Part shown: piece by piece, positions 45,852 to 64,000 of the stretch
Position numbering within the stretch: position 1 is the stretch's first letter
Layout of the letters: every line of letters starts with the position of its first letter
IMG/VR virus record: IMGVR_UViG_3300028558_000791
Coordinates: 372,001-436,000 of that record
Length of the DNA stretch: 64,000 nt
Direction: 5' to 3' (one strand)
Made by a program: the position numbers and the translations under genes
Notes under the pieces: generated by a model
The model's database searches: none
What the model was told of the DNA's origin: nothing
Seen by the model: only the letters and a program-made list of their open reading frames with translations

Positions 45852-45874
45852 GATAACACCTAAAATAAGGTTAC

Positions 45875-46777: not shown

Positions 46778-46885
46778 GAAACCCCGACGAGGTTCAGTAG
46801 GCTACCGTACTTGGCAACCCAAGATTACAAAGATACAAGAATACATACCAAACCGTTACTCAAATGTTTCTTATACATTGTATAA

Positions 46886-47455
46886 TCAGTAATTTATATT
46901 ACTATCTTTATAACCTATTGCGTCAATTAACAATGGCTGAGTTGCATCAATTACCTTCTCACCTCTTAAGAGTATAGCCGTATGATACTCCCTACTACAA
47001 CCATCATCCGACCAGTCATGCCAGCGAGCCTCAAATTGGCTGCTAGAGAGACGTGCATACCGCCCAGCCACGCTGGGGTCCATTAGGTCCACAAAACCAT
47101 TTATAAGGTTAACCAGGACCACGTAATGACCGTCTTCCCAGACCTCCGAGAAGTCCGTATCAGGCCCGTAATTACCCCAAGCTTGAATATTAAGAATACA
47201 TGTGTATCCAGAATCTAAATACTCTTTAAGATCAGTTATCTTTAGGTTATTACGATACAACACTTCTAACCCATAAGATACTGCTAGTTCTATAATGCTA
47301 TAGCCAGAAGTACCATCGCAGTTTGTTCCAAGTAATGGGTATAACTCTGGTTCGCGCCCTGACCAAACTCCCCAATAGTATAAACAACTAGCTAAAGATG
47401 CTGCCCCACAACTGTAATCATAGGCTTGTCTAACTAGAGGAACATAGGTTGGCAT
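46886..47455 (-). CDS. C39-family cysteine peptidase (start reassigned to MPTYVPL)
   Basis: QAYDYSCGAASL, GHYVV, MDPS, FEARW. Confidence 0.85.
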   Translation of the reverse strand: MPTYVPLVRQAYDYSCGAASLASCLYYWGVWSGREPELYPLLGTNCDGTSGYSIIELAVSYGLEVLYRNNLKITDLKEYLDSGYTCILNIQAWGNYGPDTDFSEVWEDGHYVVLVNLINGFVDLMDPSVAGRYARLSSSQFEARWHDWSDDGCSREYHTAILLRGEKVIDATQPLLIDAIGYKDSNINY

Positions 47456-47810
47456 GTTGAATCTCCTGCTATTGAGAAAGTGAGAGAGTAAAAGAGAGAG
47501 AGAGGGTACAATCTGCCTGTATGCCATTATAGCCCAAGCGTATGCCTAACTGCAAAAACATATGTTTATAATGCGATAAGATGCTTTGAGAAATACCTAA
47601 TTTATATTTGCTAGTTTTGTCGTACCTATATCCTGAATAGACGCTAATAGGACACCCATATCGTCCATATGGGATACCAGAGCACACTCTAACTGCCCCA
47701 GATAGTCACTTGATGGTCACTTGATAGCTGTTAGACCCCTATTTGGGAGGCGAACTGCCACCGCGCACGACAATGGCCCACACTTTTCCAGTAGGGGTAT
47801 AATGGGGCTT

Positions 47811-47843
47811 TGGCATAGCCTTTGCAATATGCAATCTATGCCA
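47811..47843. promoter_or_regulatory. Inverted sigma54-like element, copy 1 (right arm 2 nt short)
   Basis: TGGCATAGCCTTTGCA-ata-TGCAATCTATGCCA. Confidence 0.55.
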
Positions 47844-47917
47844 ACTACATGTAGTATGATCTCTTTCCTTTCGATCACATCACATTATGTGTAGTATATT
47901 TCAATACATAGCAGAGA

Positions 47918-47952
47918 TGGCATGAGTATTGCAAAAAGCAATCAATATGCCA
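47918..47952. promoter_or_regulatory. Inverted double sigma54-like element, copy 2
   Basis: TGGCATGAGTATTGCA-aaa-AGCAATCAATATGCCA; GG-N10-GC on both strands. Confidence 0.7.
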
Positions 47953-48021
47953 GGTGGGATAAGGTGAGAGGTCTTTGGCTCCCATTCACTGTCTGATCTT
48001 ACCCAAGATCGAGGTGATTCG

Positions 48022-48396
48022 ATGAACAAGAGCCAGGTTTCCGCCATCCTCGCAAGCAATCCTCGTGCCGTCACCAAGGCCGTTGTCCTACTCTTCGGCT
48101 TGCAGACCCACCAGGAGCGTGGGACACATCGCACCATCGACGACAACGGGGTCGGGTTCAGCGCGGCCGACGCTGACTTCGGCACCTACTGCGCGATGTG
48201 GGTGCTCAACATCCACAAGACCACTCCGCCTCACATCGTGGCCGACCGACTGGCCCACTACTTGCAGGGCGACAACCACCGCAGGTATCGCACCCTGTCG
48301 GGGAAGTTCCTCCAACGTGCGCTGGAGATGACACCGCGCTACTGGCGGCAGCTCTCACATGCTGCGAAGGTGAAGGCGGAGTCGGTTCCCTTCTGA
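48022..48396 (+). CDS. Hypothetical early protein
   Basis: GAGGTG RBS; GC3-rich codons; NGVGFSAAD motif. Confidence 0.8.
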   Translation: MNKSQVSAILASNPRAVTKAVVLLFGLQTHQERGTHRTIDDNGVGFSAADADFGTYCAMWVLNIHKTTPPHIVADRLAHYLQGDNHRRYRTLSGKFLQRALEMTPRYWRQLSHAAKVKAESVPF

Positions 48397-48413
48397 CATC
48401 AGGCGACTCGTCG

Positions 48414-48448
48414 GGAGAGGTAGGACATCCTACCTCTCCTTTCTTTTG
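48414..48448 (+). terminator. Rho-independent terminator
   Basis: GGAGAGGTAGG...CCTACCTCTCC followed by TTTCTTTT. Confidence 0.8.
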
Positions 48449-48461
48449 TCTACAGTGTGGT

Positions 48462-48497
48462 TGGTATAGTCGTTGCAATATGCAAGGTGCCATGCCA
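48462..48497. promoter_or_regulatory. Inverted sigma54-like element, copy 3
   Basis: TGGTATAGTCGTTGCA-ata-TGCAAGGTGCCATGCCA (right arm 1 nt long). Confidence 0.6.
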
Positions 48498-48598
48498 GGT
48501 AAGTGCGAGCCAGGTAAAAGGGCGCGGCTCCCATTCACTGACTACCCAGGCCGGAAGGTGCGACGCCAACCCAAACCGAACGAAAGAGAGATACCGCC

Positions 48599-49294
48599 AT
48601 GTCCGACCTTTCCCTCTCGCCCGACAACATCATCGCTCTCCTCCTCTCGCAGCACACGTCGCACCAGGTCGCACACGAGGCGACCAAGGTGACCACCACC
48701 ATCATCCGCAACGCGGAGCCCAGCAAGAAGCAGGCCAAGCAGGCCGAGGCCCGCAAGGGCGAGGTGAAGGCTCCCATTCACAACGGCCCCAAGGTGTTCG
48801 GTGTGGCGATGCCCGACCGCAACACGCTGGATGCCAAAGGCTTCCTGATGGCTTGCCGCGATGCCGGCAAGCGCTCCTTCCAGACGGTCAACGAAGTGAC
48901 CGGCGAAGTTACCTCGGTCGTCAAGCGTGACGAGCGAGAGGTGCGCAACGATCTCATCAAGGCGATTCACGCCTACTGCGGTTACGACAACGGCCGTGAC
49001 TTCGGCTCGCAAGACACGGCGGCCAGGGCGAAGGCCAGTCGCGAGCTGAGCGGCAAGCCCATCGTCCTCGGTCCCTCGCGAGAGGAGCAGAAGGCGGCCG
49101 AGCGGTCAATGACCGGCTACGTTCACGGCATGCCGAACTACATGGCGTCCAAGGTGGCCGAGCTGACGGCACGTGAGACGGCCACGGCAGAGGAGCTGAT
49201 CGATGCCCGCAAGGAGGGCAACGAGGTGGAGGTGGCACGCTTGACCGCACTGCTCTCCAACGTGCGAGGCGAGCTGAGCCGCCTCGGTCTCTGA
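48599..49294 (+). CDS. Hypothetical early protein
   Basis: 231-aa ORF with strong codon bias. Confidence 0.8.
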   Translation: MSDLSLSPDNIIALLLSQHTSHQVAHEATKVTTTIIRNAEPSKKQAKQAEARKGEVKAPIHNGPKVFGVAMPDRNTLDAKGFLMACRDAGKRSFQTVNEVTGEVTSVVKRDEREVRNDLIKAIHAYCGYDNGRDFGSQDTAARAKASRELSGKPIVLGPSREEQKAAERSMTGYVHGMPNYMASKVAELTARETATAEELIDARKEGNEVEVARLTALLSNVRGELSRLGL

Positions 49295-49315
49295 CACACA
49301 CACGGACTTACATCA

Positions 49316-49355
49316 GAGAGGGCTGCACCTGGCGGGGTGTGGCCCTTTCGTTTTT
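49316..49355 (+). terminator. Rho-independent terminator
   Basis: GAGAGGGCTGCACC...GGTGTGGCCCTTTC followed by GTTTTT. Confidence 0.7.
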
Positions 49356-49367
49356 CCGCAATCGGCT

Positions 49368-49402
49368 TGGCACGGACGTTGCAGAGTGCAAACGATGTGC
49401 CA
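49368..49402. promoter_or_regulatory. Inverted double sigma54-like element, copy 4
   Basis: TGGCACGGACGTTGCA-gag-TGCAAACGATGTGCCA; near-perfect consensus on both strands. Confidence 0.75.
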
Positions 49403-49642
49403 CGGAGATCCGCCTCTCCACACAAGAAAGAGAGTGCCGCTCCCATTCACTGACAGTCGAGAGCGAGAAGCGCAGCAACGAACGGACGGCAGCAAGCGCA
49501 AGCAAGCGCAGCGCATGTAGGATGCGTGACTAGGAGACCCCGAAGACGTGCCCGAATGTGAGGGCATGTAAGTCACCCTACCCGATGACCATAGCGCAAG
49601 TCGTCCAGCCGAGCTGCTCCCATTCACCGCTCGCTGAAAGGA

Positions 49643-49888
49643 GTGAGCATGAGACGCCGCAACGAAGTCGATACCAACGCACTTCCGGATCTGATGCCAC
49701 GTGTGGCACGCATGTTGGAAGTGACGGGCGTGAGCATCGAAGACGTGGTGGCAGAATTGCGCACTACGGATCTGACGGAGTACAACATCTTCCTCACCAT
49801 CAAAGGTGCGGCCATGTGTTACCCTCACGTCAAGCAAGCGCTCGCTGATGCCTGCCCCGACACTCTGCCCTCTCCCATTCACGACTGA
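49643..49888 (+). CDS. Hypothetical protein (start 49643 or 49649)
   Basis: AAGGAG RBS; C-terminus PSPIHD is encoded by the repeat. Confidence 0.7.
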   Translation: MSMRRRNEVDTNALPDLMPRVARMLEVTGVSIEDVVAELRTTDLTEYNIFLTIKGAAMCYPHVKQALADACPDTLPSPIHD

Positions 49889-49944
49889 CTCGAAACGATA
49901 AACGCCGCAAGGCAATCACCGCAACGAACGAAAGAGAGACCATC

Positions 49945-50133
49945 ATGGAAAACGTCAAGTTCACCCGCAACGGCGACAAGCTCACCATCGAAGTCGACCT
50001 CGCCTACCGTGGGCAGGTGTCCGCCACCGGCAAGACCCTTCGGGTCGCCAGCACCGAAGGCAACGTCCCCTGCGACGGTTCCCCCGAGATCAAGATCGGT
50101 CTCAACATCTTCGCCCCTGTTCCCAAGAAGTAA
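49945..50133 (+). CDS. Small hypothetical protein, paralogue of 56324..56500
   Basis: MENVK...LTIEVDLA.RG..S.TGKT.RVASTEGN. Confidence 0.85.
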   Translation: MENVKFTRNGDKLTIEVDLAYRGQVSATGKTLRVASTEGNVPCDGSPEIKIGLNIFAPVPKK

Positions 50134-50203
50134 TTCGCCTACATCGGCGAGCCCCCTGCAATCCCGATACCAACAGGTACGCAAGGGACAGGGGGCTGAC
50201 TCT

Positions 50204-50290
50204 TCGCCAGTGCTACACGAAAAACGGGGCGGGACGCCTCGGCCTTCCAAGGTGGTGTAGCGTAAGGGTTCGATTCCCTGACTGGCGACC
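50204..50290 (+). ncRNA. tRNA-like element with acceptor-like stem and T-arm but no D-arm
   Basis: TCGCCAGT/ACTGGCGA, GCTACAC/GTGTAGC, AGGG-TTCGATT-CCCT. Confidence 0.55.
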
Positions 50291-50338
50291 CTGGCTCCCA
50301 TTCATGAGCCAGTAGATTCCAACATCGGAGGTTCCAAC

Positions 50339-50626
50339 ATGAAGTCACTCGACATGGCAGACAAGTATCCCCCGGCCGAAGACTTCGATGATGAGGACAC
50401 CACCGTCCGCATGCATGTGCCTACCTTCCTCCCCAAGGTCATCGTCGAGGATGAGGGTGAGGACGAGTACGACCTCTGGGGAGCTAGGGATACCATCCCC
50501 TGCCCACCTCCCTACCCTCATCCCCACATGAAGCGAGAAGTCAATTGGGGTGCAGTCGGCATCCTTGCCTTCACCATCGTCTTCTGGTGGACCGTCGGCT
50601 ACATGCTCTACTGCTGGATCTACTGA
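50339..50626 (+). CDS. Acidic protein with a C-terminal TM anchor
   Basis: GGAGG RBS; hydrophobic C-terminus. Confidence 0.75.
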   Translation: MKSLDMADKYPPAEDFDDEDTTVRMHVPTFLPKVIVEDEGEDEYDLWGARDTIPCPPPYPHPHMKREVNWGAVGILAFTIVFWWTVGYMLYCWIY

Positions 50627-50710
50627 CCAGCTCCCTGGCCCGACCTCCCATTCACTGGGAGGCGGGCTTTAGGCATTATCAGGGGGCATGGGCAATGTCC
50701 CCATCTGTGT

Positions 50711-50852
50711 AGGAGGAATGCCGAGTAGTCGCTCAAGCCTGGAACATGGCGACACGAGCGTAAAAAGACTAGCAGGTGTCACACACCGTTTGGGCTAACT
50801 AGCTCCCGAGTGTGTGAAACTGTAATCTAGTGTAGCTACTCGTAACTCTCCT
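50711..50852 (+). ncRNA. Candidate structured RNA
   Basis: Nested helices AGGAG/CTCCT, CGAGTAG/CTACTCG, CGCTC/GAGCG, TCACACAC/GTGTGTGA-like. Confidence 0.45.
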
Positions 50853-50892
50853 TGTGTTCTCTCCCATTCACAACTCACCCTGAGGTGCAGCC

Positions 50893-51141
50893 ATGGCGTA
50901 CGGTCTTTGGAATGTGAGCGGTAAGGTCATCATCCCCGGCACGCGCAAGAGCGCCAGCTTCGGTCCCGTTCGCATCGGCGATAAGGATCGTCAGACCGCC
51001 AGCAAGTGGCTGGCCTGCATGCTGAACGACAAGTTCAAGCGTGACCTGCGCGGAGGTGCGAAGTTCTCCGACCACTTCGCCCTCATGAACCTGAAGTGGG
51101 AAGATGTCGGCAAAGCTGCGCCGGCTCCCGCACAGACGTGA
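50893..51141 (+). CDS. Hypothetical protein
   Basis: GAGGTG RBS; follows a repeat copy. Confidence 0.75.
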   Translation: MAYGLWNVSGKVIIPGTRKSASFGPVRIGDKDRQTASKWLACMLNDKFKRDLRGGAKFSDHFALMNLKWEDVGKAAPAPAQT

Positions 51142-51188
51142 GGTGGATGGCTCCAGGGTAATACCTGGGGCCGTTCTTCAAAAGGCGG

Positions 51189-51223
51189 TGGCACGCCCGT
51201 TGCACTCTGCATCCCGCATGCCA
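51189..51223. promoter_or_regulatory. Inverted double sigma54-like element, copy 5
   Basis: TGGCACGCCCGTTGCA-ctc-TGCATCCCGCATGCCA. Confidence 0.75.
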
Positions 51224-51268
51224 TCGCCGCTTCGGCTCCCATTCACAACCCCCTGGAGAGCAACGAAC

Positions 51269-51415
51269 ATGGCAACGTCATTCGTCATCAAGCTCCCCAA
51301 GCAGAAAGCGCGTAACCCCCTGGGTCACATGCAAGAGCGGAAGCAGATCATGCGTGACCGTCGCAACCGGCGTCCCAAGGATGCCCGCAAGCAACGCGAA
51401 CCCTTCGAGTCCTGA
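51269..51415 (+). CDS. Small basic protein MATSFVIKLPKQKARNP...
   Basis: GGAG RBS; flanked by two repeat copies. Confidence 0.7.
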   Translation: MATSFVIKLPKQKARNPLGHMQERKQIMRDRRNRRPKDARKQREPFES

Positions 51416-51450
51416 ACCCTCCCATTCACCGCCAACAAGTGGAGATGCAC

Positions 51451-51633
51451 ATGAGCAAGCAAACGTTCCGAGTGGTCGAGATGACGATTGTCCCTGGCCA
51501 GGAGCCGGCGACCAAACTCGTGCAGGGCAACCTCCCCAAGGGCAAGGCTCAGTCTCTCCAGGAGAAGCTGGAAGAGAAGCTCGGCGACTTCGACCCGCAG
51601 AAGGTGGTCTCCTACCTGGTCCAACCAGCATGA
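51451..51633 (+). CDS. Small hypothetical protein MSKQTF...
   Basis: GGAG RBS. Confidence 0.7.
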   Translation: MSKQTFRVVEMTIVPGQEPATKLVQGNLPKGKAQSLQEKLEEKLGDFDPQKVVSYLVQPA

Positions 51634-51881
51634 CTGTAGCACCGAACCTTGCCAGCATCCAAAGCGTAGGATGCTGGTACGAGGACCAGGAACGTACGCA
51701 ACCCATGCGGTACCAGGTGTGTGTACGCCAGTTCCGTAGAGGTGAGTGGGAAGTCATGATGGGTAGCATCGTAACCTACCTGTCACCCGAAGACTACTGC
51801 GACATGCATCAGCTACTACTGGTGGAGATGTATCGTGGCACGCGCCATGCACTCTCACACGAACGCACGGAGTTGATCTAA
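51630..51881 (+). CDS. Hypothetical protein MTVAPNL...
   Basis: ATGA overlap with the upstream gene. Confidence 0.6.
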   Translation: MTVAPNLASIQSVGCWYEDQERTQPMRYQVCVRQFRRGEWEVMMGSIVTYLSPEDYCDMHQLLLVEMYRGTRHALSHERTELI

Positions 51882-52216
51882 CGATCCTCCTACAAGTCAG
51901 CAGAGCTGGGGAGGATGTCATGTAACATCACACGGTTGATGACCGTTGTTTACTTGCGCCGACAACCAGAGAGATAGTAGCGACTCCCATTCATCGACAC
52001 CCTCAAACCAAAGGAATCGAGATGCTGGGTTTAGTCGGGCGGGAGTGAGTCCCGCCCATCCTTGGCTACAGTGCTGCCCACGCGACTCTATGGGCTCTAG
52101 CTGCAAGGTAATTAGGTAACGTAGTCTGCAACGTTCTCACATAAGCGTTCCGGGTTTAGGAACCAGTGAGTCATATCCTTCTAGGATGTGGGGATACGTC
52201 AGCTACCTACCGTTGG

Positions 52217-52243
52217 ATTGGGGCCTGGCGAGGCCCCAATTTT
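52217..52243 (+). terminator. Rho-independent terminator
   Basis: ATTGGGGCCT-ggcg-AGGCCCCAAT followed by TTT. Confidence 0.65.
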
Positions 52244-52332
52244 AATACGAACGCACCTACCCCGCACCACAGCACAGCACACACGGCGCCATCAGGGCGC
52301 TTTTTGTTAGCGTACATGTAGGGAAAGGTAGT

Positions 52333-52367
52333 TGGCATGGGCAGTGCATATTGCAAACGATATGCCA
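52333..52367. promoter_or_regulatory. Inverted double sigma54-like element, copy 6
   Basis: TGGCATGGGCAGTGCA-tat-TGCAAACGATATGCCA. Confidence 0.7.
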
Positions 52368-52417
52368 GCAGGTTCCGCCCGCACAATCAAGCGACCGAAG
52401 GTGTGGGATAAGGTGGT

Positions 52418-52452
52418 TGGCATGGCCGTTGCATATTGCGAAGGCTATGCCG
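52418..52452. promoter_or_regulatory. Inverted double sigma54-like element, copy 7
   Basis: TGGCATGGCCGTTGCA-tat-TGCGAAGGCTATGCCG. Confidence 0.7.
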
Positions 52453-52632
52453 GGCTGGGCGCGAGGGTGCAAGGGAAGCGGCTCCCATTCACGGATAGCC
52501 GGCGACCGAAAGCGCCGCAACCAACCACGAACAAGCAAACGAGTCACACACTCACAATGACTCACAAGGTACGGAACGGCAGCTCCCATTCACGGCGCAT
52601 CGAACGCCAAGGTCACGACGGAGGAAACGAAC

Positions 52633-52833
52633 ATGGGTAAAGTCATCGTCATCATTCTGGCCACGTGTGCGGCACTGGGTATCCTGGTGCACTTCCTGGG
52701 CCATGCGACTATGGGGTCAACGGCCGTCACTGTCCCCAACACGGAACACACTCCCGCATTCGGACTTACATGGTTCGTGATCGGTGGTCTGTTCATCGGC
52801 GGTCTCTTCTACAAGCTCGTCAAGGGCAAGTAG
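52633..52833 (+). CDS. Small two-TM membrane protein
   Basis: GGAGG RBS; two hydrophobic segments. Confidence 0.75.
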   Translation: MGKVIVIILATCAALGILVHFLGHATMGSTAVTVPNTEHTPAFGLTWFVIGGLFIGGLFYKLVKGK

Positions 52834-52857
52834 GAGGGCCTGTAGGAATCTGGGTAT

Positions 52858-52925
52858 ACCCCCTACCCCTAAAAAAGTTTTACCTGTTTTCCCAAAAACG
52901 GTAATCGGGGTTCGGTATACGCATA
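52858..52925 (+). repeat. 68-bp intergenic element, copy 1
   Basis: ACCCCCYACCCCTAAAAAAGTTTT-N17-CGGTAATCGGG...CATA, collinear with 55527..55594. Confidence 0.7.
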
Positions 52926-53040
52926 CCATTCCTGTAGGTTTTCATGGGTGGGGTGTCAAGCCCCCAGCAAGTCTAGCTAGGAGCCTACCTTGGTTGCCAA
53001 CTAGCTAGCTCCCATTCACTGCACGTCGAGAGGTGAAAGC

Positions 53041-53295
53041 ATGGCACACTCAATCGGTCTCGGCGATATCGTCTCTCTCCAGTGGAGTGATGGGTACGAC
53101 AACGGTACTGTCTGTCAGGTCCACAAGGACGGAACGGTAGACGTCTTTCGTCCCTACGTCCACAATGCTGACTTCTCATGTGCAGGTAGTCACGAGGGTT
53201 CACTGTCGGTCATCTGCTACATTGGAGTCGAGACTAGCAAGGGTATCAATCCCGAGCGTCTCAAGGTACTCCGCAAGGGCGGCACGATTCGATAG
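53041..53295 (+). CDS. Hypothetical protein (SH3-like pattern)
   Basis: GAGGTG RBS; LGDIV...GTVCQVHKDGTVDV. Confidence 0.75.
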   Translation: MAHSIGLGDIVSLQWSDGYDNGTVCQVHKDGTVDVFRPYVHNADFSCAGSHEGSLSVICYIGVETSKGINPERLKVLRKGGTIR

Positions 53296-53331
53296 CCTCC
53301 CATTCACGGCGGCAGGAAAGCGACAATAGCA

Positions 53332-53533
53332 ACGGCGGGCTAGACTCTGGGTACATGGCATACTTGGTCGCTACCCAAGTAGGTCCCAACTGAGACAGTA
53401 TCTTGTAGCGAGGGAATGTCTTGGGGGCCACAAGCTCCCCACATAGGGGTTCGACTCCCCACTACTATCCAAGTGGTAGGAGACCAGGTTGGCTGGGTGT
53501 GTGTTGGCATGAACCTAGAGTCTAGCCCATCGT
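53332..53533 (+). ncRNA. Candidate structured RNA closed by a long terminal stem, with an internal T-loop hairpin
   Basis: GGGCTAGACTCTGGGTACATG pairs with CATGAACCTAGAGTCTAGCCC; internal GGGG-TTCGACT-CCCC. Confidence 0.6.
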
Positions 53534-53569
53534 CGGGCTCCCATTCACGGCCCATCAGCGGAGGATGAC

Positions 53570-53800
53570 ATGAGCAACAACAACGCAACGGCGCAGCAAG
53601 TCACGGCAGGCATCAGAGCAGCGGCGGCCATTGGTGAGGTAATTCGAGACTTGGGCTCTGTCCCCTCGGGGCACCTGTATGCCCGACTCATGGGACGTAT
53701 GAGCCTGGACACCTACAACAGTCTCATCGGACTACTCAAGCAAGCCAATCTGGTGGAGGAGTCTAACCACCTTCTCACCTGGGTCGGCCCCAAAGAGTAA
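53570..53800 (+). CDS. Small hypothetical protein (wHTH-like pattern)
   Basis: GGAGG RBS. Confidence 0.75.
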   Translation: MSNNNATAQQVTAGIRAAAAIGEVIRDLGSVPSGHLYARLMGRMSLDTYNSLIGLLKQANLVEESNHLLTWVGPKE

Positions 53801-53809
53801 CCATCTCAC

Positions 53810-54067
53810 ATGAAAAAACATCTCATCATCCTACTCACGCTTACCCTGATGGTGGCGGCAGGTGTTCACTGCGGGGAGCGTGAGTTGGAGTCAGAGTGTG
53901 ACTCTTTCGGTCCCACATCCACACACTGTCAGTGGAAGATCGAAAACAGGTATGCGGGACTCTGCTGTCCTGGCACACATCCCTACTGCGGTAGAGAGGG
54001 TACTACCTGTCCAGTTGGTAGTTGCTGCGAGTCGGCACCTCTGTACACACATCTACACACCAACTAG
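53810..54067 (+). CDS. Secreted Cys-rich small protein
   Basis: Signal peptide; CCP...YCG...CPVGSCC. Confidence 0.7.
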   Translation: MKKHLIILLTLTLMVAAGVHCGERELESECDSFGPTSTHCQWKIENRYAGLCCPGTHPYCGREGTTCPVGSCCESAPLYTHLHTN

Positions 54068-54099
54068 CTCCCATTCACGGCAGACCGGAGAGCAAGGTC

Positions 54100-54321
54100 A
54101 TGAAGACCGCAATCGAGGTTCCCAAGGCCATTGTCATCCAGGTGGCTACGTGGTACGATGGTGAGCTGGTACTGGAGACGGTGTGTCGAGACTACGACCA
54201 CTACACCACACTACCCAACGTGGTAGTCTACGAAGGGGTGGAGTGTGGTAAGACGGGTTGGAGTAGTGATAACCACTATGCCTGCTACAAGTCAGGAGCC
54301 AGTATCGCACATGGGCGCTGA
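54100..54321 (+). CDS. Hypothetical protein MKTAIEVP...
   Basis: GGAG RBS after a repeat copy. Confidence 0.7.
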   Translation: MKTAIEVPKAIVIQVATWYDGELVLETVCRDYDHYTTLPNVVVYEGVECGKTGWSSDNHYACYKSGASIAHGR

Positions 54322-54460
54322 TTCCAAGAGCAAGCGTGAGCGTTGGGGCGAGGTAGTTAGCAAGACGGGGAAGTGTCCCTTCTGCCCACCTCACAACGGG
54401 GAGAACGCCAAGAGGCGTACTCGTACGGACAAGTACAAGAGCAAGCGCAAGGGCCGCTGA
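54311..54460 (+). CDS. Small basic CPFCPPH protein
   Basis: AGGAG RBS; MGADSKSKRERW...CPFCPPHNGEN. Confidence 0.65.
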   Translation: MGADSKSKRERWGEVVSKTGKCPFCPPHNGENAKRRTRTDKYKSKRKGR

Positions 54461-54508
54461 GGGCTCCCATTCACGGTCGAACGAAACCCAAGGTCGGAGG
54501 CAACGAAC

Positions 54509-55138
54509 ATGGCTGACACGAAAGAGCGCAAGATGACCCCCAAGGGATTCTTGCACAAGACCACGACCAAGGCCGCAAACTCGGCCATCGCGTTTCTGAC
54601 TCAGTACCGGGAGTATCTGACCACGGGTGAGGTGAAGGAAGCCTGCGCCCCCATCATCGCCAAGGTGGACTCTGGTGAGCTTCTGCCCACCCCTGCCCTC
54701 AAGGAGATTCAGTATGCGGTGATGACGCACATCATCGTCTCTGACTCCACCAAGGCCGACAAGTCAGCGGTGGAGCCCAAGGTCAAGGGGCAGACACGCA
54801 AGGCATGGCGGTCAACCATCTACGATGCGGCTGGTGTAGTCCAGACTCGCACCAACGGCAAGGGTGAGGAGGAGGATCTCATTCAGGGGTTCGATCTCTC
54901 ACAACGTGCCAACGAGTGGGCAGACCGGCGCTTGTTCGAGGGGACGCATGGCTGGTATGCCATCGTGGAGCACACTGTCATCCCCAACATCTCCAGTCGA
55001 ATCGAGCGAGGGGATTCCATGGCACGAATCCTGAAGCAGCCCAAGGGGCCGGCCATTCAGCAGAAGGGCAAGAGCACCAAGACTCTCGGGTTCGGGGTCA
55101 AGGCCAAACAGACACGAGTGACTTTCTCGGGTAGCTGA
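54509..55138 (+). CDS. Hypothetical protein
   Basis: GGAGG RBS; 209 aa. Confidence 0.8.
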   Translation: MADTKERKMTPKGFLHKTTTKAANSAIAFLTQYREYLTTGEVKEACAPIIAKVDSGELLPTPALKEIQYAVMTHIIVSDSTKADKSAVEPKVKGQTRKAWRSTIYDAAGVVQTRTNGKGEEEDLIQGFDLSQRANEWADRRLFEGTHGWYAIVEHTVIPNISSRIERGDSMARILKQPKGPAIQQKGKSTKTLGFGVKAKQTRVTFSGS

Positions 55139-55207
55139 GACAAGGGAGGGGCAGGTAGGTTGTCGTGGGCCTGACCTGCCCCTCCCATTCACGGAAGGAC
55201 GAGTGAC

Positions 55208-55501
55208 ATGGCTATGACGTTGACCGAAGCAATGAAGGCACTGGGTACGACAACCGAGTCAGTCACGGCCAAGCTGAGGGAGAAAGGTATCAAAGGGTAC
55301 CGTCGTCTGGCACACTCGTGTCCCCTCGCCAAGTATCTCAAGCAAGAGTGTCAGGTCCAGGATGTGACTGTCGGCACCACGGCTAACATCTACCAGGGTG
55401 AGAGTCAGACACCGGATGAGAGTTACATGCTCCCCGATGGTGTCAAGGTGTGGGTGCAGAACTTCGATGATGGGATGTATCCGGAGTTCTGGTTGGACTG
55501 A
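55208..55501 (+). CDS. Hypothetical protein
   Basis: CPLAKYL...FDDG.YP motif. Confidence 0.75.
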   Translation: MAMTLTEAMKALGTTTESVTAKLREKGIKGYRRLAHSCPLAKYLKQECQVQDVTVGTTANIYQGESQTPDESYMLPDGVKVWVQNFDDGMYPEFWLD

Positions 55502-55526
55502 AGGTCCCTTGCTGGAGTAGGTGTAG

Positions 55527-55594
55527 ACCCCCCACCCCTAAAAAAGTTTTCGGTCAATTCTCAGAATCGGTAATCGGGCCTTGGAATCCACATA
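55527..55594 (+). repeat. 68-bp intergenic element, copy 2
   Basis: Collinear with 52858..52925. Confidence 0.7.
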
Positions 55595-55733
55595 GTTTTT
55601 TCCAGGGTTTTTTGGCTCCCATTCACTGAGCGAATCTAGCGGCGGATCGGAAAGGGTGTATGTCGCCATGAGAACCTGGGAAGAGTACGAGGAAGAGACC
55701 AGCAAGTTTCCCTGGTGGTACACGGGGGACTAG

Positions 55734-55994
55734 GTGGACACCGACGAATTCGAGATAACTGCAACACATCCACACATGGAGGCACGTGTGTGGACTAGGA
55801 GTCGCTACGAAGTAGCCAAGGCAATTGCTGATGGGGCGGTTACCAAGCTAGGGTATAGCAAGGTAGTAGTCATCAACACCTTCGGTGGCCATAGGAGCGA
55901 TACCTTGTACGAGGTAGTGTCGGGCTCCCATTCACGGGACTACGTGGAGGAGGAACGCAATGCAAGTCACCAAGCGTTCAATGCTCAGCGGTAA
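55734..55994 (+). CDS. Hypothetical protein
   Basis: GTG start with GGGGA RBS. Confidence 0.6.
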   Translation: MDTDEFEITATHPHMEARVWTRSRYEVAKAIADGAVTKLGYSKVVVINTFGGHRSDTLYEVVSGSHSRDYVEEERNASHQAFNAQR

Positions 55995-56157
55995 AGAGCA
56001 CACTCTGGAGATTGACATCACCTGGGAACAGATGCATCGTTGGAAGATGGGTGGAGAGCTACTACAGAACGTGTGTCCCCACTTGTCGGTGGATGACCGA
56101 GAGTTTCTCATCAGTGGTTCCACCAAGGAAGAGTGGGATAACTTCTTCAAGCGATAA
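55960..56157 (+). CDS. Small hypothetical protein
   Basis: GGAGG RBS; PHLS.DDREFLISG...EW motif. Confidence 0.75.
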   Translation: MQVTKRSMLSGKEHTLEIDITWEQMHRWKMGGELLQNVCPHLSVDDREFLISGSTKEEWDNFFKR

Positions 56158-56323
56158 GGGGCCTGCGAGTCTGGGTAGAACCAGTAAGGATCCCTTCACG
56201 TAAACCTGTAATAGTAACCTAAACCCTTGGCCCGTACCTATCGAAAGATGGGGCGGGCATAAGGCATTGAAACAACTTGGGAGATGCAATGCTCCCATTC
56301 ACCAACGCAACGGAGCAATGCAC

Positions 56324-56500
56324 ATGGAAAACGTCAAGATGTCGGTCAACGGAACGAAGCTCACCATCGAGGTGGATCTCGCCCATCGTGGTGCGAAGTC
56401 CAGCACGGGGAAGACGGTGCGAGTCGCTTCCACCGAGGGGAACATCGAGTGTCCCGAGAATCCGGCCATCAAGGTTGGCCTGAATATCTTTACGAAGTAA
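56324..56500 (+). CDS. Small hypothetical protein, paralogue of 49945..50133
   Basis: Most residues identical to 49945..50133. Confidence 0.85.
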   Translation: MENVKMSVNGTKLTIEVDLAHRGAKSSTGKTVRVASTEGNIECPENPAIKVGLNIFTK

Positions 56501-56561
56501 TTCGTAAGGGTAGGATCAACTCCCATTCACCAAACAACCAAACGAGAGACACAACATCAAC

Positions 56562-56759
56562 ATGTGCGGCAACAAGCGGGATGCAGTCGAGAACGTCCAG
56601 ATCAACCTCAACTACATGAAGGAGGACGTCAGCAGCGCACTCTCCTACGCCAGTGATGTGGGCGACCCGGAGCTGACCAAGCAGCTCACGGAGCTGAAGG
56701 ACAAGACCCAGGGCGTCAAGGACTACATCAAGTCCAAGGCCGACCCCAAGAAGGGCTGA
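56562..56759 (+). CDS. Small helical hypothetical protein
   Basis: Strong codon bias. Confidence 0.7.
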   Translation: MCGNKRDAVENVQINLNYMKEDVSSALSYASDVGDPELTKQLTELKDKTQGVKDYIKSKADPKKG

Positions 56760-56828
56760 AGCACAAGACGGGCATTGGACCGATAGCTATCTAACCATAC
56801 CTCCCTCTGGCGGTAGCTATCCGAGGTC

Positions 56829-56949
56829 CGAAACAAGGTAAGTGAAAGTATATAGGTAGGGTCCCTGTCACACTAGCGGTGGTGATGTCAGCCGTCCCGA
56901 CCATGCGAGTAACTACCTTGTCCCCAGCGTAGGGCGCTGGGCTGATGAG
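56829..56949 (+). ncRNA. Type II hammerhead ribozyme candidate
   Basis: C-GAA-ACAAGGTA/TACCTTGT-C (GUC site at 56920-56922), stem I CCCAGCG/CGCTGGG, CTGATGA-G. Confidence 0.7.
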
Positions 56950-56955
56950 CCAACC

Positions 56956-57123
56956 ATGAAGTATCTCCTCCCATTCATAGTAGTAGTGATGATAGGTTGC
57001 AGGACGGTACTACCCAAGGAAGACTACAGCATAGTCATTACCTCTCATGTCTGCGATGTAGACGGAGGTGCGTGTCACAAGGAGACGAAGGTTCTCCCAT
57101 TCACGGCGGAGGGTTCAAAGTGA
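56956..57123 (+). CDS. Small putative lipoprotein MKYLLPFIVVVMIGC (55 aa, not in the ORF track)
   Basis: Manual translation; lipobox-like MIGC; TGATG overlap with the next gene. Confidence 0.6.
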   Translation: MKYLLPFIVVVMIGCRTVLPKEDYSIVITSHVCDVDGGACHKETKVLPFTAEGSK

Positions 57124-57371
57124 TGGCAATCGGTACAACGCTGACGGTTCAAGGAATCACTTGGGCATCCATGAAGTACAATGGCAAGCTAGCCCTGGGA
57201 TACAGGAAGCATGCCATCGCTTGGGATTGTGGTAGTGGCAAGTATCACATCTTGGAAGAGGGTCGCAGTATCTTCTCTGACTCAAGTGTGACTGCCTGCT
57301 TGGAGAACGCGGCAGCACTGGTGTGGGACTACTACGCCAGCAAGATCATTCCCTCTTGGGAAGTGGCATAG
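57123..57371 (+). CDS. Hypothetical protein MAIGTTL...
   Basis: GGAGGG RBS. Confidence 0.7.
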   Translation: MAIGTTLTVQGITWASMKYNGKLALGYRKHAIAWDCGSGKYHILEEGRSIFSDSSVTACLENAAALVWDYYASKIIPSWEVA

Positions 57372-57454
57372 GGACGAAGGCGCTCCCATTCACGGGACGC
57401 CGGCACGAACGAACAACCGAGCAATCACGCTCAACTGAAAAGGACGAATCAATC

Positions 57455-57907
57455 ATGGCTTGGGACAAGACCCCCTCTCAGAAGGAAGCCGTCAAGGCGT
57501 TTCTCGTGACCACGGATGGCAAGACGGATCTGGAGGCTTCGGTGGAGAAGTACCGCCAGGTGTGTCTCGGATACATCGCTGGTCAGACGGCAGAGCAGGA
57601 TCTCGTTGCATCCTGCATGACGGAGCTGTTCAACTTCCGCAAGGGAGCCACGCTCAACCTGGACTACATCAAGAGCCAGACGGTGGCTCTGATGGTCAAG
57701 CGTGAGCCCAGCCTCAGCGACCCCACGCTGTTCGCCATGCTGAGTGGTCGGGTGGAGGACTACCTCCATGCCAACTGCAACCAGCCGGCGCAGGAAGCCA
57801 AGGGCAAGCGTCCTGCCAAGGAAGCTGTCACTGGCCAGACCTACTCGGTCCGTCGTGGTCTGGGTGGCGGGTTCTACCGCGACACCGACCAGGCGCCTAC
57901 CAAGTGA
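57455..57907 (+). CDS. Hypothetical protein MAWDKTP...
   Basis: AAGGA RBS; strong codon bias. Confidence 0.8.
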   Translation: MAWDKTPSQKEAVKAFLVTTDGKTDLEASVEKYRQVCLGYIAGQTAEQDLVASCMTELFNFRKGATLNLDYIKSQTVALMVKREPSLSDPTLFAMLSGRVEDYLHANCNQPAQEAKGKRPAKEAVTGQTYSVRRGLGGGFYRDTDQAPTK

Positions 57908-58005
57908 GGTTCATTCGCCGACAGTGGGCCAAGGTGGTTCACTGGATCAACGACGGAACGCACGGTCCCTGCGACTGGTAGGGTTACCATTCACGGAGAG
58001 TCAGC

Positions 58006-58629
58006 ATGCGTAATTCAATTGCGGTGATGTTGTGCTGCTTGGTTTGCGCATGCGGCTCTTTTGCTTCAGAGGATGAGGCGAGTGATACTGTTGCTGCTAC
58101 CACTGATTATGGTAGTAGCAGCAACAGTGATAGTGGGAATGACAACATTGTTGTCATCATTCACAAGGGAGTTTTCACTTTCTACAACGACAGTGATTCT
58201 CAGGTGAGTGACTCTGGTGTCGAGACCAGTGTGGATGTGTCGGATGCTGGAGTGGATTCCAGTGACGATGATGCATCGGCTGGTGATGATGCCGGCCTGA
58301 GCGAACCGACTTGCGAGACAGGAACCTACGTTGTCGGGCATTGCCTATACAACATGGCTACTGTTTGTCAGGAATACTTTTCTGACCATGAAGCTGACTG
58401 CAAGAGTCTGACGGTTCATCCTATGGGAGGGTCTTGGTGGCCTGGACCATGTGGTGGTGAGCCTGGCACTGACCTTCACCGTTCATCTGGTGGCTGTATG
58501 AACGAGTGTGGGAGCATTACTTGGAGTTACCGCCTGGGTGGTGGTCCTCCTGACGAGGTATCGATTCAGGGCGAGAAGGATCTTTGCGAAGCCTTCCCTG
58601 GTTATACCTACATCATGACTGGATTCTGA
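58006..58629 (+). CDS. Cys-rich acidic lipoprotein
   Basis: Lipobox VCAC; DSG/DAG low-complexity linker; Cys-rich C-terminus. Confidence 0.75.
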   Translation: MRNSIAVMLCCLVCACGSFASEDEASDTVAATTDYGSSSNSDSGNDNIVVIIHKGVFTFYNDSDSQVSDSGVETSVDVSDAGVDSSDDDASAGDDAGLSEPTCETGTYVVGHCLYNMATVCQEYFSDHEADCKSLTVHPMGGSWWPGPCGGEPGTDLHRSSGGCMNECGSITWSYRLGGGPPDEVSIQGEKDLCEAFPGYTYIMTGF

Positions 58630-58639
58630 CACGAGGTTT

Positions 58640-58819
58640 CCTAGACAGAGTGACGGTTGCCTCCCTGAATAAGACAGAGGGTTACTATGCAATGGTCAAG
58701 CGCCAGTAACCGGGACGCAGCTTGATAGGACTGACCAACTAACAAGTCAGTGGGTTTCGACTCCCATTCACGGCAGAGAACGTCGTGAGCTATATGAGGC
58801 AGGCGTCACCCTGTTTAGG
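58640..58819 (+). ncRNA. Candidate structured RNA overlapping the downstream RBS
   Basis: CCTAGACAG/CTGTTTAGG, GTGACG/CGTCAC, TGCCTC/GAGGCA closing helices; internal hairpins. Confidence 0.5.
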
Positions 58820-58828
58820 AGATACATC

Positions 58829-59188
58829 ATGTGCAATCCCGATGTGGATACTAAGGTCGAGTTGGCGAGACTGCCACAACTCCTACGGGAGAGGGGATGG
58901 TCAAGCTCAGAAGTCAAGAAGGACTATCCTGGTTCTTCTGGTCCTGGCGACTGGATCCAAGGTTCCTCGGGGCCAACCGAAACCCACCAGGGGATCACTT
59001 TCTTCTCTGGCACACCATTCCAGGTGATTGCCCGTGAGGATGACCTAAAGGTACGAGTAGGTTGGCCGGCACAAGGAACGACTACCTATACTTGCTTCTC
59101 AGCAGAGCAGGTGGAATGGTGGTTGGGTAAGATACTGGAGATGGCCGACAAGGACATTGCTGATAGACGACGGGCCTTACTAGTCTGA
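58829..59188 (+). CDS. Hypothetical protein
   Basis: AGGAG RBS. Confidence 0.7.
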   Translation: MCNPDVDTKVELARLPQLLRERGWSSSEVKKDYPGSSGPGDWIQGSSGPTETHQGITFFSGTPFQVIAREDDLKVRVGWPAQGTTTYTCFSAEQVEWWLGKILEMADKDIADRRRALLV

Positions 59189-59191
59189 GAT

Positions 59192-59271
59192 GTAGCTAAG
59201 AGAGCGTAGGTTCGCTCAAGGGTGTTGTAACCCTGGCCTGATCAACCGTGGTTCGAGTCCACCTAGCTACC
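59192..59271 (+). tRNA. Degenerate tRNA / tRNA-like RNA (non-canonical anticodon loop, identity uncertain)
   Basis: GTAGCTA/TAGCTAC acceptor, GAGCG/CGCTC D-arm, AGGGT/ACCCT with 6-nt loop GTTGTA, GTGG-TTCGAGT-CCAC T-arm; no encoded CCA. Confidence 0.55.
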
Positions 59272-59272
59272 C

Positions 59273-59410
59273 GAGCTGACTGTCACACCGAAGGATACGA
59301 CCCTCTCCAAAGAACCCCCAGGGAGGCTACGGAGGATCTTTTCGTCCCTCGATGGACTAGGTGGCACATCCCCGAAGGTGGTTGGGGAAGTGTGCAACGA
59401 CAGTCGGCTC
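59273..59410 (+). ncRNA. Candidate structured RNA
   Basis: 12-bp closing stem GAGCTGACTGTC/GACAGTCGGCTC; internal GCACATCCCC/GGGGAAGTGTGC hairpin. Confidence 0.45.
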
Positions 59411-59439
59411 TCTAATTGCACTCTGCAAAACAGGAGCCA
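59405..59439. promoter_or_regulatory. Inverted double sigma54-like element, copy 8
   Basis: CGGCTCTCTAATTGCA-ctc-TGCAAAACAGGAGCCA; GG-N10-GC on both strands. Confidence 0.6.
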
Positions 59440-59481
59440 TCGGTGCTCCCATTCACGGCACGACGAAAGCCGAGGGAGTCG

Positions 59482-59670
59482 ATGTATCCTATCGTTTGCA
59501 AACATCACAAGGAACATTGCGAGGACTGCGCTATGTGTCGTAACTTCGACCAGGCTGTCCAACAGAGCTTAGTGAGTTTCAAGCCTCATCCTAGCCAACA
59601 CTCCACGGTCATGATGCCGAGAATCAAGGCTTGGATTGACTCAGTGTTTCCGGTTCCCATCAAGTCATAG
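59482..59670 (+). CDS. Small Cys/His-rich protein MYPIVCKHH...
   Basis: GAGGGAG RBS. Confidence 0.65.
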   Translation: MYPIVCKHHKEHCEDCAMCRNFDQAVQQSLVSFKPHPSQHSTVMMPRIKAWIDSVFPVPIKS

Positions 59671-59676
59671 GGCCAC

Positions 59677-60045
59677 ATGAAACTCCTACTCAACGCCATT
59701 CAATGTCTGTCATGTGATGAAGTGATTGTCTCTCGGGACCGTCATGACTTCAAGACATGCAAGTGTGGTAAGGTTAGCGTGGATGGTGGGTTGGACTACA
59801 AACGGCGTGCCTTCCAGGGAGTACATAGTTACTTGGAGCGTTGTGCCTGGACCTATTCCAAGAACACCAATCCCAGCGATGTGGTAGACAAGTTCATTGT
59901 CTGGAGTCCTGGCGGCAAGACCAATCCTGGAGTCATCTTCGACTATCAGGGCGATGCCGAAGCATCGGCCAAGGAACTATCGGCCAGGGTTCCAGAGAGT
60001 GATTGGTACGTGGCACAACTGTATCACGTGCCCACTAAGCCATGA
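59677..60045 (+). CDS. Zn-ribbon protein
   Basis: NAIQCLSC..VIVS..RHDFKTCKCG.VSVDGG. Confidence 0.8.
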   Translation: MKLLLNAIQCLSCDEVIVSRDRHDFKTCKCGKVSVDGGLDYKRRAFQGVHSYLERCAWTYSKNTNPSDVVDKFIVWSPGGKTNPGVIFDYQGDAEASAKELSARVPESDWYVAQLYHVPTKP

Positions 60046-60749: not shown

Positions 60750-60754
60750 AACAT

Positions 60755-60946: not shown

Positions 60947-60950
60947 CAAC

Positions 60951-61556: not shown

Positions 61557-61568
61557 GGGCTCCCATTC

Positions 61569-62059: not shown

Positions 62060-62094
62060 CGCCTCCCATTCACGGCACATCGGGGGCCGAAGCC

Positions 62095-63172: not shown

Positions 63173-63175
63173 GTC

Positions 63176-63615: not shown

Positions 63616-63616
63616 C

Positions 63617-63943: not shown

Positions 63944-64000
63944 ACCCGCTCCCATTCACGAACCGCAAACGAGGAAGACCATGGACAACACCACACCGCC

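Follow-up and report, generated by a model that had tools for sequence, protein, structure and literature searches.

Symmetric double sigma54-type sites, proposed to be promoters, at the head of a putative early gene block in a 481-kb phage and in other viral contigs

We found that the G+C-rich gene block of a 481-kb uncultured rhizosphere phage, inferred to be early, starts with 35-bp palindromes, each made of two interlocked sigma54-type (-24/-12) sites on opposite strands. The same design recurs in about 250 viral contigs, while in bacterial contigs the strict pattern was not found. It may thus be an undescribed way for phages to use a host sigma factor. We analysed a 64,000-nt stretch of the genome (the window; positions 372,001 to 436,000 of IMG/VR record IMGVR_UViG_3300028558_000791). 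Unless marked as genome positions, coordinates refer to this window.

The preliminary description listed eight copies of the element, and the analysis bore this observation out in full. A search for TGGCA-N7-TGCA-N3-TGCA-N7-TGCCA with up to 3 mismatches gave 6 matches in the window (47918, 49368, 51189, 52333, 52418 and 59405), against 0.02 expected from 100 shuffles. The two remaining copies, at 47811 and 48462, have a perfect left arm (TGGCATAGCCTTTGCA and TGGTATAGTCGTTGCA) and the 3-nt centre ATA, but their right arms have a shortened spacer. The claim that the GG-N10-GC spacing is present in the left arm of 8 of 8 copies and in the right arm of 6 of 8, always with a 3-nt centre, is therefore correct. 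A ninth palindrome lies outside the window, at genome position 444646. The copies and the features around them are as follows.

47811..47845 (+): copy 1; left arm TGGCATAGCCTTTGCA perfect, centre ATA, right arm TGCA-N5-TGCCA with a spacer 2 nt too short; predicted + start about 47837; conserved in two related contigs, L072 and L073.
47918..47952 (no strand assigned): copy 2; both arms at consensus, the - strand arm reading TGGCATATTGATTGCT; predicted starts about 47944 (+) and 47926 (-); lies between - strand peptidase genes and + strand early genes.
48462..48496 (+): copy 3; left arm is the TGGTAT variant, right arm out of register; follows the terminator at 48413-48440.
49368..49402 (no strand assigned): copy 4; exact palindrome pattern with both arms perfect; follows the terminator at 49316-49349; predicted starts about 49394 (+) and 49376 (-).
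51189..51223 (no strand assigned): copy 5; exact pattern; left arm perfect, right arm with 1 mismatch to the 12-position consensus.
52333..52367 (no strand assigned): copy 6; exact pattern; first of a tandem pair 85 bp apart; follows the terminator at 52285-52301.
52418..52452 (no strand assigned): copy 7; left arm perfect, right arm with 2 mismatches.
59405..59439 (no strand assigned): copy 8; degenerate, with 3 mismatches to the pattern; the - strand arm TGGCTCCTGTTTTGCA is better than the + arm CGGCTCTCTAATTGCA.
47979..63958 (+): 37 copies of CTCCCATTCA, all on the + strand.
47734..47787 (no strand assigned): conserved non-coding block GACCCCTnTTTGGGAGGCG..CTGCCACCGCGCACGAC..CCCACACTTTT, exactly at the G+C jump; shared with two related contigs.
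48413..48440 (+): intrinsic-terminator-like hairpin that ends the first early unit; similar ones lie at 49316-49349 and 52285-52301.
48022..48396 (+): first early gene (124 aa, no Pfam family); homologues lie in the early regions of the related giant phages G020, G004 and G011.
45153..47527 (-): three genes with peptidase matches (C39; trypsin-like; a weak, below-cutoff M10-like match) to the left of the boundary; the only genes that the leftward arms of copies 1-2 could serve.

The sites are concentrated in one part of the genome. By a 12-position consensus, nine perfect half-sites lie within genome 419.8-424.5 kb (4.7 kb), against 0.04 expected in the 25-kb stretch that contains them, and only four lie in the other 420 kb. 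The arrangement is not an assembly artefact, as L072 and L073 show the same junction and a second metagenome run holds 90% of the sampled words of the region.

To find out whether the arms are of sigma54 type, we compared them with the published consensus mrNrYTGGCACG-N4-TTGCWNNw (PMC2725144). Each arm fits YTGGCACGr-N3-TTGCW, including positions on which we did not search. Over 136 arms from 68 viral elements, Y precedes TGG in 68%, C/T stands at position 6 in 97%, R at position 7 in 94% and at position 8 in 72%, and T precedes TGC in 68%. The chance hits in bacterial contigs show none of these biases. The fit also holds for variants with centres of 1, 2, 4 and 5 nt.

The placement of the elements is promoter-like. 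They sit at the head of a block of small genes without family matches, and terminator-like hairpins end at 48440, 49349 and 52301, just upstream of copies 48462, 49368 and 52333. E. coli-type sigma70-like promoters are scarce there (2 found against 6.9 expected). In the studied genome (G000) and in the giant phage G004 the gene-facing arm is the better kept.

Across IMG/VR, inverted pairs of half-sites are enriched only at centre lengths of 1-5 nt, with 11 loci at 1 nt, 72 at 2 nt, 69 at 3 nt, 58 at 4 nt and 40 at 5 nt, against 3-4 loci at the control lengths of 7 and 12 nt. The strict pattern has 29 viral loci and 0 hits in 596 Gb of bacterial contigs, where the paired layout in general is at chance level.

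The palindrome heads transcription units in the G+C-elevated regions, mostly one-stranded and taken to be early, of several giant-phage lineages; G004, G011, G020 and G023 carry 9-21 such elements each. It had been stated beforehand that a lack of conservation of the right arms in related phages would speak against the sigma54 reading; the right arms turned out to be conserved in relatives. In L073, however, the right arm has a 4-nt spacer instead of 7, so strict double-promoter geometry is not universal.

The element also sits in the central, often divergent control region of many unrelated 40-60 kb phages. Here, 22 of 43 scorable loci are in divergent junctions, typically between terminase and primase/helicase modules. 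Copies 1-2 of the window are divergent too, but copies 3-8 and most copies in G023, G011 and G004 have genes on one side only, so these counts do not settle whether genes on both sides are a general property of the element. Stand-alone half-sites with the same consensus lie next to the palindromes in small phages, so a half-site looks like a unit on its own.

The preliminary description also proposed looking in the genome for a gene of its own for sigma54 or for a sigma54 activator. Our searches of the genome returned no match to the sigma54 DNA-binding domain, the sigma54-activator AAA+ domain (PF00158, best E = 0.18) or RNA polymerase families, although the control genomes for PF00940 did not register either. 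Among 48 records of phages that carry the element, none has the sigma54 DNA-binding domain or a T7-type RNA polymerase, and one has a borderline match to the activator domain, the other 47 lacking even a weak one. A sigma70-family gene is present in the giant phages but absent from nearly all the small ones. Sigma54 promoters need an ATP-driven enhancer-binding protein, and no upstream activator site is evident near the elements. Since a host activator cannot be excluded, these searches leave undecided whether a cognate activator exists.

Taken together, these results make it somewhat more likely than not, in our view, that each 35-mer is a pair of sigma54-class promoters written on opposite strands and serving as early promoters. 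The two -12 elements would flank a shared 3-nt centre, and each -24 element would lie in the first transcribed bases of the other. As the phage encodes no detectable RNA polymerase and no sigma54, the host's sigma54 holoenzyme would read the elements, sitting on the palindrome in either orientation. What activates the elements and why they are symmetric is unknown. What the analysis demonstrates is the sequence, its symmetry and placement, its conservation across unrelated phages, its absence from bacteria and the absence of phage-encoded sigma54 and sigma54-activator domains; sigma54 binding, the start sites, the early timing and the source of activation (a host enhancer-binding protein or an unrecognised phage factor) are inferences. 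No RNA run was listed for this DNA, so start sites were not mapped, and neither holoenzyme binding nor dependence on rpoN was assayed.

In this view, the gene-facing (+) arm is the working early promoter, and each of the eight copies in the window and the ninth beyond it would open a short transcription unit just after the terminator of the previous one. The opposite arm could serve divergent genes where there are any, that is, the - strand peptidase genes next to copies 1-2 and, in small phages, the second gene module. Elsewhere it would be kept for a reason not yet known. One possibility is the capture of scarce holoenzyme, and another is easier DNA opening, because both sites share the point where melting begins.

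The interpretation given in the preliminary description was thus only partly supported. It correctly recognised the arms as sigma54-type, but the two sites are not convergent, as it had stated. With a start 12 nt after the C of each GC, the starts fall at positions 27 (+) and 9 (-) of the 35-mer, which means divergent transcription about 18 bp apart from one shared core. Its suggestion of a myxobacterial host has no support: the phage averages about 42% G+C and comes from an uncultured rhizosphere virus record. The host is not identified. Of 5 metagenome bins that held look-alike contigs, 4 encode a Sigma54_DBD protein, but binning is unreliable and this is about the background rate, so whether the host possesses sigma54 is not decided by it. 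The proposed mutual-exclusion switch and holoenzyme decoy were not put to a test.

Several points speak against the reading as a promoter pair. In G023 and G011 the arm that faces no gene is as well conserved as the gene-facing one, which promoter function in one direction does not explain. Polymerase bound the wrong way round should compete with productive binding. The tight 2-5 nt centre suggests that one complex reads both arms together, which two independent promoters would not require.

The palindrome might instead be the binding site of a symmetric (dimeric or tetrameric) DNA-binding protein other than sigma54, such as a phage early-gene repressor or activator or a conserved host protein, with the likeness to sigma54 sites being mimicry or overlap. 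The dyad symmetry is perfect, with four T(G/T)GCA blocks, the centre length is tightly limited, both arms are equally conserved in G023 and G011 although all genes run one way, and tandem arrays of 2-4 copies in small phages resemble operator arrays. However, the same sequence is kept across at least 21 groups of loci that share no flanking protein with one another and across genomes of 32-65% G+C, and the only recurrent neighbours are terminase and primase/helicase. This disfavours the operator for a dimeric phage protein suggested in the preliminary description and rather indicates a host factor. Outer and inner blocks differ consistently, in the way the sigma54 -24 and -12 elements differ, and single half-sites occur alone in promoter-like positions. 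The centre varies from 2 to 5 nt between lineages, which a rigid dimer would tolerate poorly. We therefore consider this alternative unlikely.

The sites might also bind sigma54 holoenzyme without productive transcription, as a sponge that drains the host's few sigma54 molecules or as stable roadblocks that insulate neighbouring transcription units. Sigma54 holoenzyme forms stable closed complexes and stays silent without an activator (PMC2725144), almost none of the carrier records shows an activator match, there are up to about 21 high-quality two-way sites per genome, and the sites lie between a terminator and the next gene. On the other hand, a sponge would not need gene-proximal placement, whereas the sites are found at the head of each unit, at the start of the early block and in the main divergent control region of small phages. 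The scarcity of E. coli-type promoters in the block and the better-kept gene-facing arm in G000 and G004 also speak against this reading, which we regard as quite unlikely.

We also considered a folded nucleic acid, either a cruciform or hairpin promoter for an unrecognised phage polymerase, as in phage N4, or an RNA hairpin that serves as a processing site. TTGCA-N3-TGCAA can form a 5-bp stem with a 3-nt loop, TGGCAY/RTGCCA can form a second stem, and the right-arm spacer changes in copies 1 and 3 and in L073 would still allow pairing. N4 hairpin promoters, which serve the virion RNA polymerase, are likewise early-region elements with a short inverted repeat and a 3-nt centre. However, the five spacer positions pair no more often than chance (0.20-0.23 observed, 0.26-0.29 expected), and the paired blocks never covary but are invariant in sequence, which is the signature of protein-DNA recognition and not of structure. 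Loop sequences are not conserved, the centre is 2-5 nt in other lineages, no RNA polymerase family and no virion polymerase was detected, though the control genomes for PF00940 did not register either, and a search of Rfam found nothing. This makes such a reading very unlikely.

Among known systems, bacterial sigma54 (RpoN) promoters share the GG-N10-GC spacing, the extended consensus on each arm and the position of the gene-facing arm upstream of genes. Here, by contrast, the sites are always or mostly paired head-to-head with a 2-5 nt centre, are carried by viruses in up to about 21 copies per genome, and lack both an enhancer-binding protein gene (with the one borderline exception) and an evident upstream activator site.

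Symmetric bidirectional sigma70 promoters (Warman et al.; PMC12825309) also have one short pseudo-symmetric core that can engage polymerase in two mutually exclusive orientations and give divergent starts, most often 18 bp apart. The dyad symmetry of both promoter elements in our 35-mer agrees with such a core, and the predicted separation is 18 bp for a 3-nt centre and 16-19 bp overall. There, however, the symmetry is inherent in the AT-rich -10 hexamer and arises almost for free, while here it does not derive from a sigma70 -10 element: two non-symmetric two-part sigma54 sites must be deliberately interlocked, and many copies have no gene on one side.

The PeSL (promoter-early stem-loop) cassettes of T4-type phages (Arbiol et al. 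2010) are repeated units of a terminator hairpin plus an early promoter in front of small early ORFs in a plastic genome region. Similarly, nearly every small gene of G023 has a terminator, a palindrome and a conserved leader of about 50 nt. PeSL promoters are sigma70-type and directional, whereas the promoter part here is sigma54-type and symmetric and is followed by a lineage-specific second motif. A promoter region of Pseudomonas phage YuA has been assigned to host sigma54 (PMC10914365). It is a single sigma54-like region among sigma70-like and phage-specific ones; the account consulted does not describe it as palindromic, and its sequence was not inspected here.

A more far-reaching possibility is that symmetric, interlocked sigma54 sites form a virus-specific promoter class, which would let phages with no polymerase, no sigma54 and no enhancer-binding protein drive their first genes with host sigma54 holoenzyme. 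The shared 2-5 nt centre, where both sites would begin DNA melting, might lower or remove the need for an ATP-dependent activator, or it might be the docking point of an unknown phage activator. This idea is tentative and, on the present evidence, rather unlikely, but if it is true, these phages could shut down sigma70 transcription without harming their own expression.

Finally, the reported second motif was confirmed as well. CTCCCATTCAC follows six of the copies, at 26, 31, 37, 12, 29 and 6 nt after their ends. Of the copies of CTCCCATTCA, 60 in the whole genome, most are intergenic and directly follow a stop codon, and the commonest distance to the next ATG is 22 nt (10 of 60).

The elements listed in the preliminary description are real: the observation of eight inverted double sigma54-type sites held. 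The genome is a single IMG/VR virus record of 480,838 bp, of which the window is bases 372001-436000, and comes from a rhizosphere metagenome. Within the window, a search with the pattern TGGCA-N7-TGCA-N3-TGCA-N7-TGCCA, allowing at most 3 mismatches, returned matches at 47918, 49368, 51189, 52333, 52418 and 59405, against 0.02 expected. The copies at 47811 and 48462 have a perfect left arm and the 3-nt centre, but their right spacer is shortened. When a 12-position consensus was applied, nine perfect half-sites were found within genome 419.8-424.5 kb, where 0.04 are expected in the 25-kb stretch that contains them, and only four in the other 420 kb. A ninth palindrome is located at genome 444646. 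Six of the copies are followed 6-37 nt later by CTCCCATTCAC, and three sit 20-30 nt after terminator-like hairpins.

The copies lie at an abrupt change in base composition. G+C content is about 0.42 over 0-420 kb, jumps to 0.58-0.61 at window position 47.7 kb (genome 419.8 kb) and then declines gradually to 0.48 by the contig end. To the left of the jump lie tail-fibre-like proteins and three minus-strand genes with peptidase matches, whereas every gene to the right of it is small and on the plus strand. Of ten of these small genes that were tested, seven have no Pfam match at all, and only one match, to a domain of unknown function, passes its curated threshold. Sigma70-like promoters of the E. 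coli type are depleted in this block (2 found, 6.9 expected). The following features surround the boundary:

Window 45153-47527, minus strand: three adjacent genes directly beside the early-region boundary, with C39-like, trypsin-like and weak, below-cutoff M10/metallopeptidase-like peptidase matches; the C39 gene is conserved in relatives.
Window 47566-47588 and 47734-47787: two non-coding blocks (TTTATAATGCGATAAGATGCTTT, and GACCCCTnTTTGGGAGGCG..CCACCGCGCACGAC) conserved with two related contigs exactly at the module boundary; their function was not identified, and a promoter, an origin, or a genome end or packaging site are candidates.
Window 47979-63958, plus strand: copies of CTCCCATTCA.
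Window 50150-50300, 50650-50860 and 51900-52320: gene-poor stretches inside the early block that may encode small RNAs.

The motif CTCCCATTCA occurs 60 times in the genome, always on the plus strand, including copies at genome 4586, 9040, 17350, 22736 and 38113 (0.13 are expected in the window). Most copies come right after a stop codon, and the commonest distance to the next ATG is 22 nt. Its nature was not established; it could be a second promoter class, a 5′-leader or a processing signal, and related giant phages have their own counterpart motifs in the same position. One of the gene-poor stretches holds a tRNA-like T-arm (GGTTCGATTCCC near 50268) that ARAGORN does not call as a tRNA and in which Rfam finds nothing. 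Over the whole of 47-64 kb, Rfam returned only one sub-threshold snoRNA-like hit.

The junction itself is real. Two related contigs (L072 and L073, with the peptidase 74% and 55% identical) show the same gene, the same conserved non-coding blocks, the same G+C jump and sigma54-like elements at the same place. The jump also occurs in the giant phages G004, G008, G011 and G023. We considered whether the G+C-rich part could be the host flank of a provirus; IMG/VR labels this record and several relatives "provirus". The host-flank reading was rejected because the motif and the gene order continue across the boundary and the same layout occurs in a contig with direct terminal repeats. The label is probably an artefact of the composition jump. 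The genome carries 57 tRNA genes and a tmRNA gene, and all but one of the tRNA genes lie in the low-G+C part, hence the early block may be tuned to host codon usage before the phage tRNAs are made.

To find out whether the arms are sigma54-type, we compared them with the published consensus mrNrYTGGCACG-N4-TTGCWNNw (PMC2725144). For this purpose we took 68 distinct viral elements found by a pattern that fixed only TGGCA, TGCA, TGCA and TGCCA. Their free positions follow the consensus: Y before TGG in 68%, C/T at position 6 in 97%, G/A at 7 in 94%, R at 8 in 72% and T before TGC in 68%. The 20 hits of the same pattern in bacterial contigs show no such bias.

The exact pattern occurs in 69 loci of IMG/VR. 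We then varied only the length of the centre, and all of the resulting sets carry the additional sigma54 letters at the free positions.

Loci in IMG/VR by length of the centre between the two arms
1 nt: 11 loci
2 nt: 72 loci
3 nt: 69 loci
4 nt: 58 loci
5 nt: 40 loci
7 nt: 3 loci
12 nt: 4 loci

In 596 Gb of bacterial and archaeal contigs, the loose 3-nt pattern gave 21 hits, which is chance level. Most of them are not sigma54-like, and the few that are lie on short binned contigs. The strict pattern gave 0 hits in bacteria, against 29 viral loci. In the phage regions that we examined, 85 of 113 perfect half-sites have an inverted partner. The centre is 3 nt in 74 of these pairs, 2 nt in 10 and 4 nt in 1, and no other spacing between -3 and 20 nt occurs. 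We have no explanation for why the centre is held to 2-5 nt. One idea is that both sites would start melting at the centre, so that flanking sigma54 contacts might ease opening, but this is speculation. In total, a precise and easily searchable design is present in about 250 viral loci, carried by several lineages of 330-480 kb phages and by many unrelated 40-60 kb phages.

Among the giant phages, G004 (452 kb, with direct terminal repeats) has 13 elements by the scoring used, G011 (448 kb) has 10 in the TGGTA variant, G020 has 9 and G023 (335 kb) has 21. All of them lie inside a G+C-elevated region of small, mostly same-strand genes, and many follow a terminator. The phage studied here (G000) shares early proteins with G004, G008, G011 and G020. 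Each lineage has its own second motif, of unknown nature, 6-40 nt downstream of the palindrome:

G000 and G020: CTCCCATTCAC
G004: TCCCATCCTCTAA
G011: CCCATCYNATAACGG
G023: ACTCTAAAAAGATATC, within a conserved leader of about 50 nt

In G023 (positions 2700-5400 of its stretch L115), nearly every small early gene has the full cassette, which consists of a terminator, the palindrome, a 17-30 nt gap, ACTCTAAAAAGATATCTTCCGAAGTAATAAAGAG, the ribosome-binding site and ATG. The leader can fold (ACTCT with AGAGT, CTTC with GAAG).

Many unrelated phages of 40-60 kb carry the element as well. Six complete small genomes fall into three groups with no shared protein, and the 69 loci form 21 clusters by shared flanking proteins. 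In the six complete genomes, 2-4 palindromes stand in tandem in one control region, with stand-alone half-sites nearby. That region typically lies between the terminase-led structural module and the primase/helicase or polymerase module, and 22 of 43 scorable loci are divergent junctions.

The search for an RpoN-like or enhancer-binding-protein gene, which the preliminary description had named as a way of checking its proposal, was carried out and found neither in this genome: profile searches returned no sigma54 DNA-binding domain (PF04552) and no sigma54-activator AAA+ domain (PF00158). Searches for a T7-type polymerase (PF00940) and for the multisubunit polymerase domain PF00623 also gave nothing, although the control genomes for PF00940 did not register, which makes that negative result weak. 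One 214-aa ORF of the sigma70 family was found. Among 48 carrier records, none has PF04552 or PF00940, and one has a borderline hit to the activator domain. Sigma70-family genes occur in the giant phages but in only one of the small complete ones.

A sequence that is kept letter for letter across phages that share no proteins and range from 32 to 65% G+C points to a conserved host reader, and the letters point to sigma54. Readings based on structure, such as an RNase III site or a cruciform, fail, since spacer positions are no more complementary than chance and the pairing blocks never covary. A packaging site or replication iterons were also considered, but they do not fit 9-21 dispersed copies in front of genes in giant phages.

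The interpretation in the preliminary description is supported only in part, as the geometry differs from the convergent second site that it proposed. With a start 12 nt after each -12 C, the predicted starts fall at positions 27 (plus strand) and 9 (minus strand), which gives divergent transcripts about 18 bp apart from one shared core. This is the layout known for symmetric sigma70 promoters, where polymerase binds in either of two mutually exclusive orientations (PMC12825309). In this genome and in G004 the gene-facing arm is the better kept, which fits a directional early promoter with an auxiliary partner. In G023 and G011, however, the gene-less arm is as well kept as the gene-facing one, for which we have no explanation.

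The sequences show that the feature is real, far from chance and conserved, while its function is inferred from them. It is best read as a symmetric pair of host-sigma54 promoters used as early promoters, a reading that we hold with moderate confidence, as somewhat more likely than not. No RNA run was listed for this material, so that transcripts were not examined, and the host was not identified. Sigma54 is the one bacterial sigma factor thought to be strictly dependent on ATP-driven activators, its holoenzyme being silent without an enhancer-binding protein, and we did not find the source of activation. Sigma54 promoters and bidirectional promoters are both known kinds, of which the elements, on this reading, are a variant; their virus-specific distribution is itself a new finding.

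Sigma54 is rarely linked to phage gene expression. A full-text literature search for sigma54 in phages returned only the mention of a sigma54-like promoter region in Pseudomonas phage YuA and no paper describing palindromic sigma54 sites. If the elements are read by host sigma54 holoenzyme, these phages have an early-expression strategy not described in the literature that we searched, there must be an unknown route of activation, and the element would be a compact two-way promoter that might be useful in engineering. The design also provides a simple marker for finding the early region, and probably the first-entering end, of uncultured giant phages.

Cultured relatives offered no close counterpart. 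Megablast of the region against cultured phages gave no match, and tblastn with the CCA-adding enzyme, the DNA polymerase and four terminases gave only distant hits of at most 38% identity. Cultured phage genomes were not scanned with the pattern itself. The nearest named relative, pelagiphage HTVC023P, has no cluster of such sites.

The rest of the genome holds further features away from the early block. Stop-codon recoding was not tested for the first of these, the possible suppressor tRNAs:

Genome 50073-50149, 172924-172997 and 173183-173255 (outside the window): tRNAs called by ARAGORN with anticodons UUA and CUA (the latter twice, labelled Pyl), possible suppressors of TAA and TAG.
Genome 170047-170403: a tmRNA with tag ANDNAFAMAA.
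Window 1559-3286, 3295-7077 and 15313-19653: large proteins of 575-1446 aa, each with a ubiquitin-E1 FCCH-like domain (PF16190); a neighbour has a laminin-G/lectin domain, and they are probably tail fibres or receptor-binding proteins.
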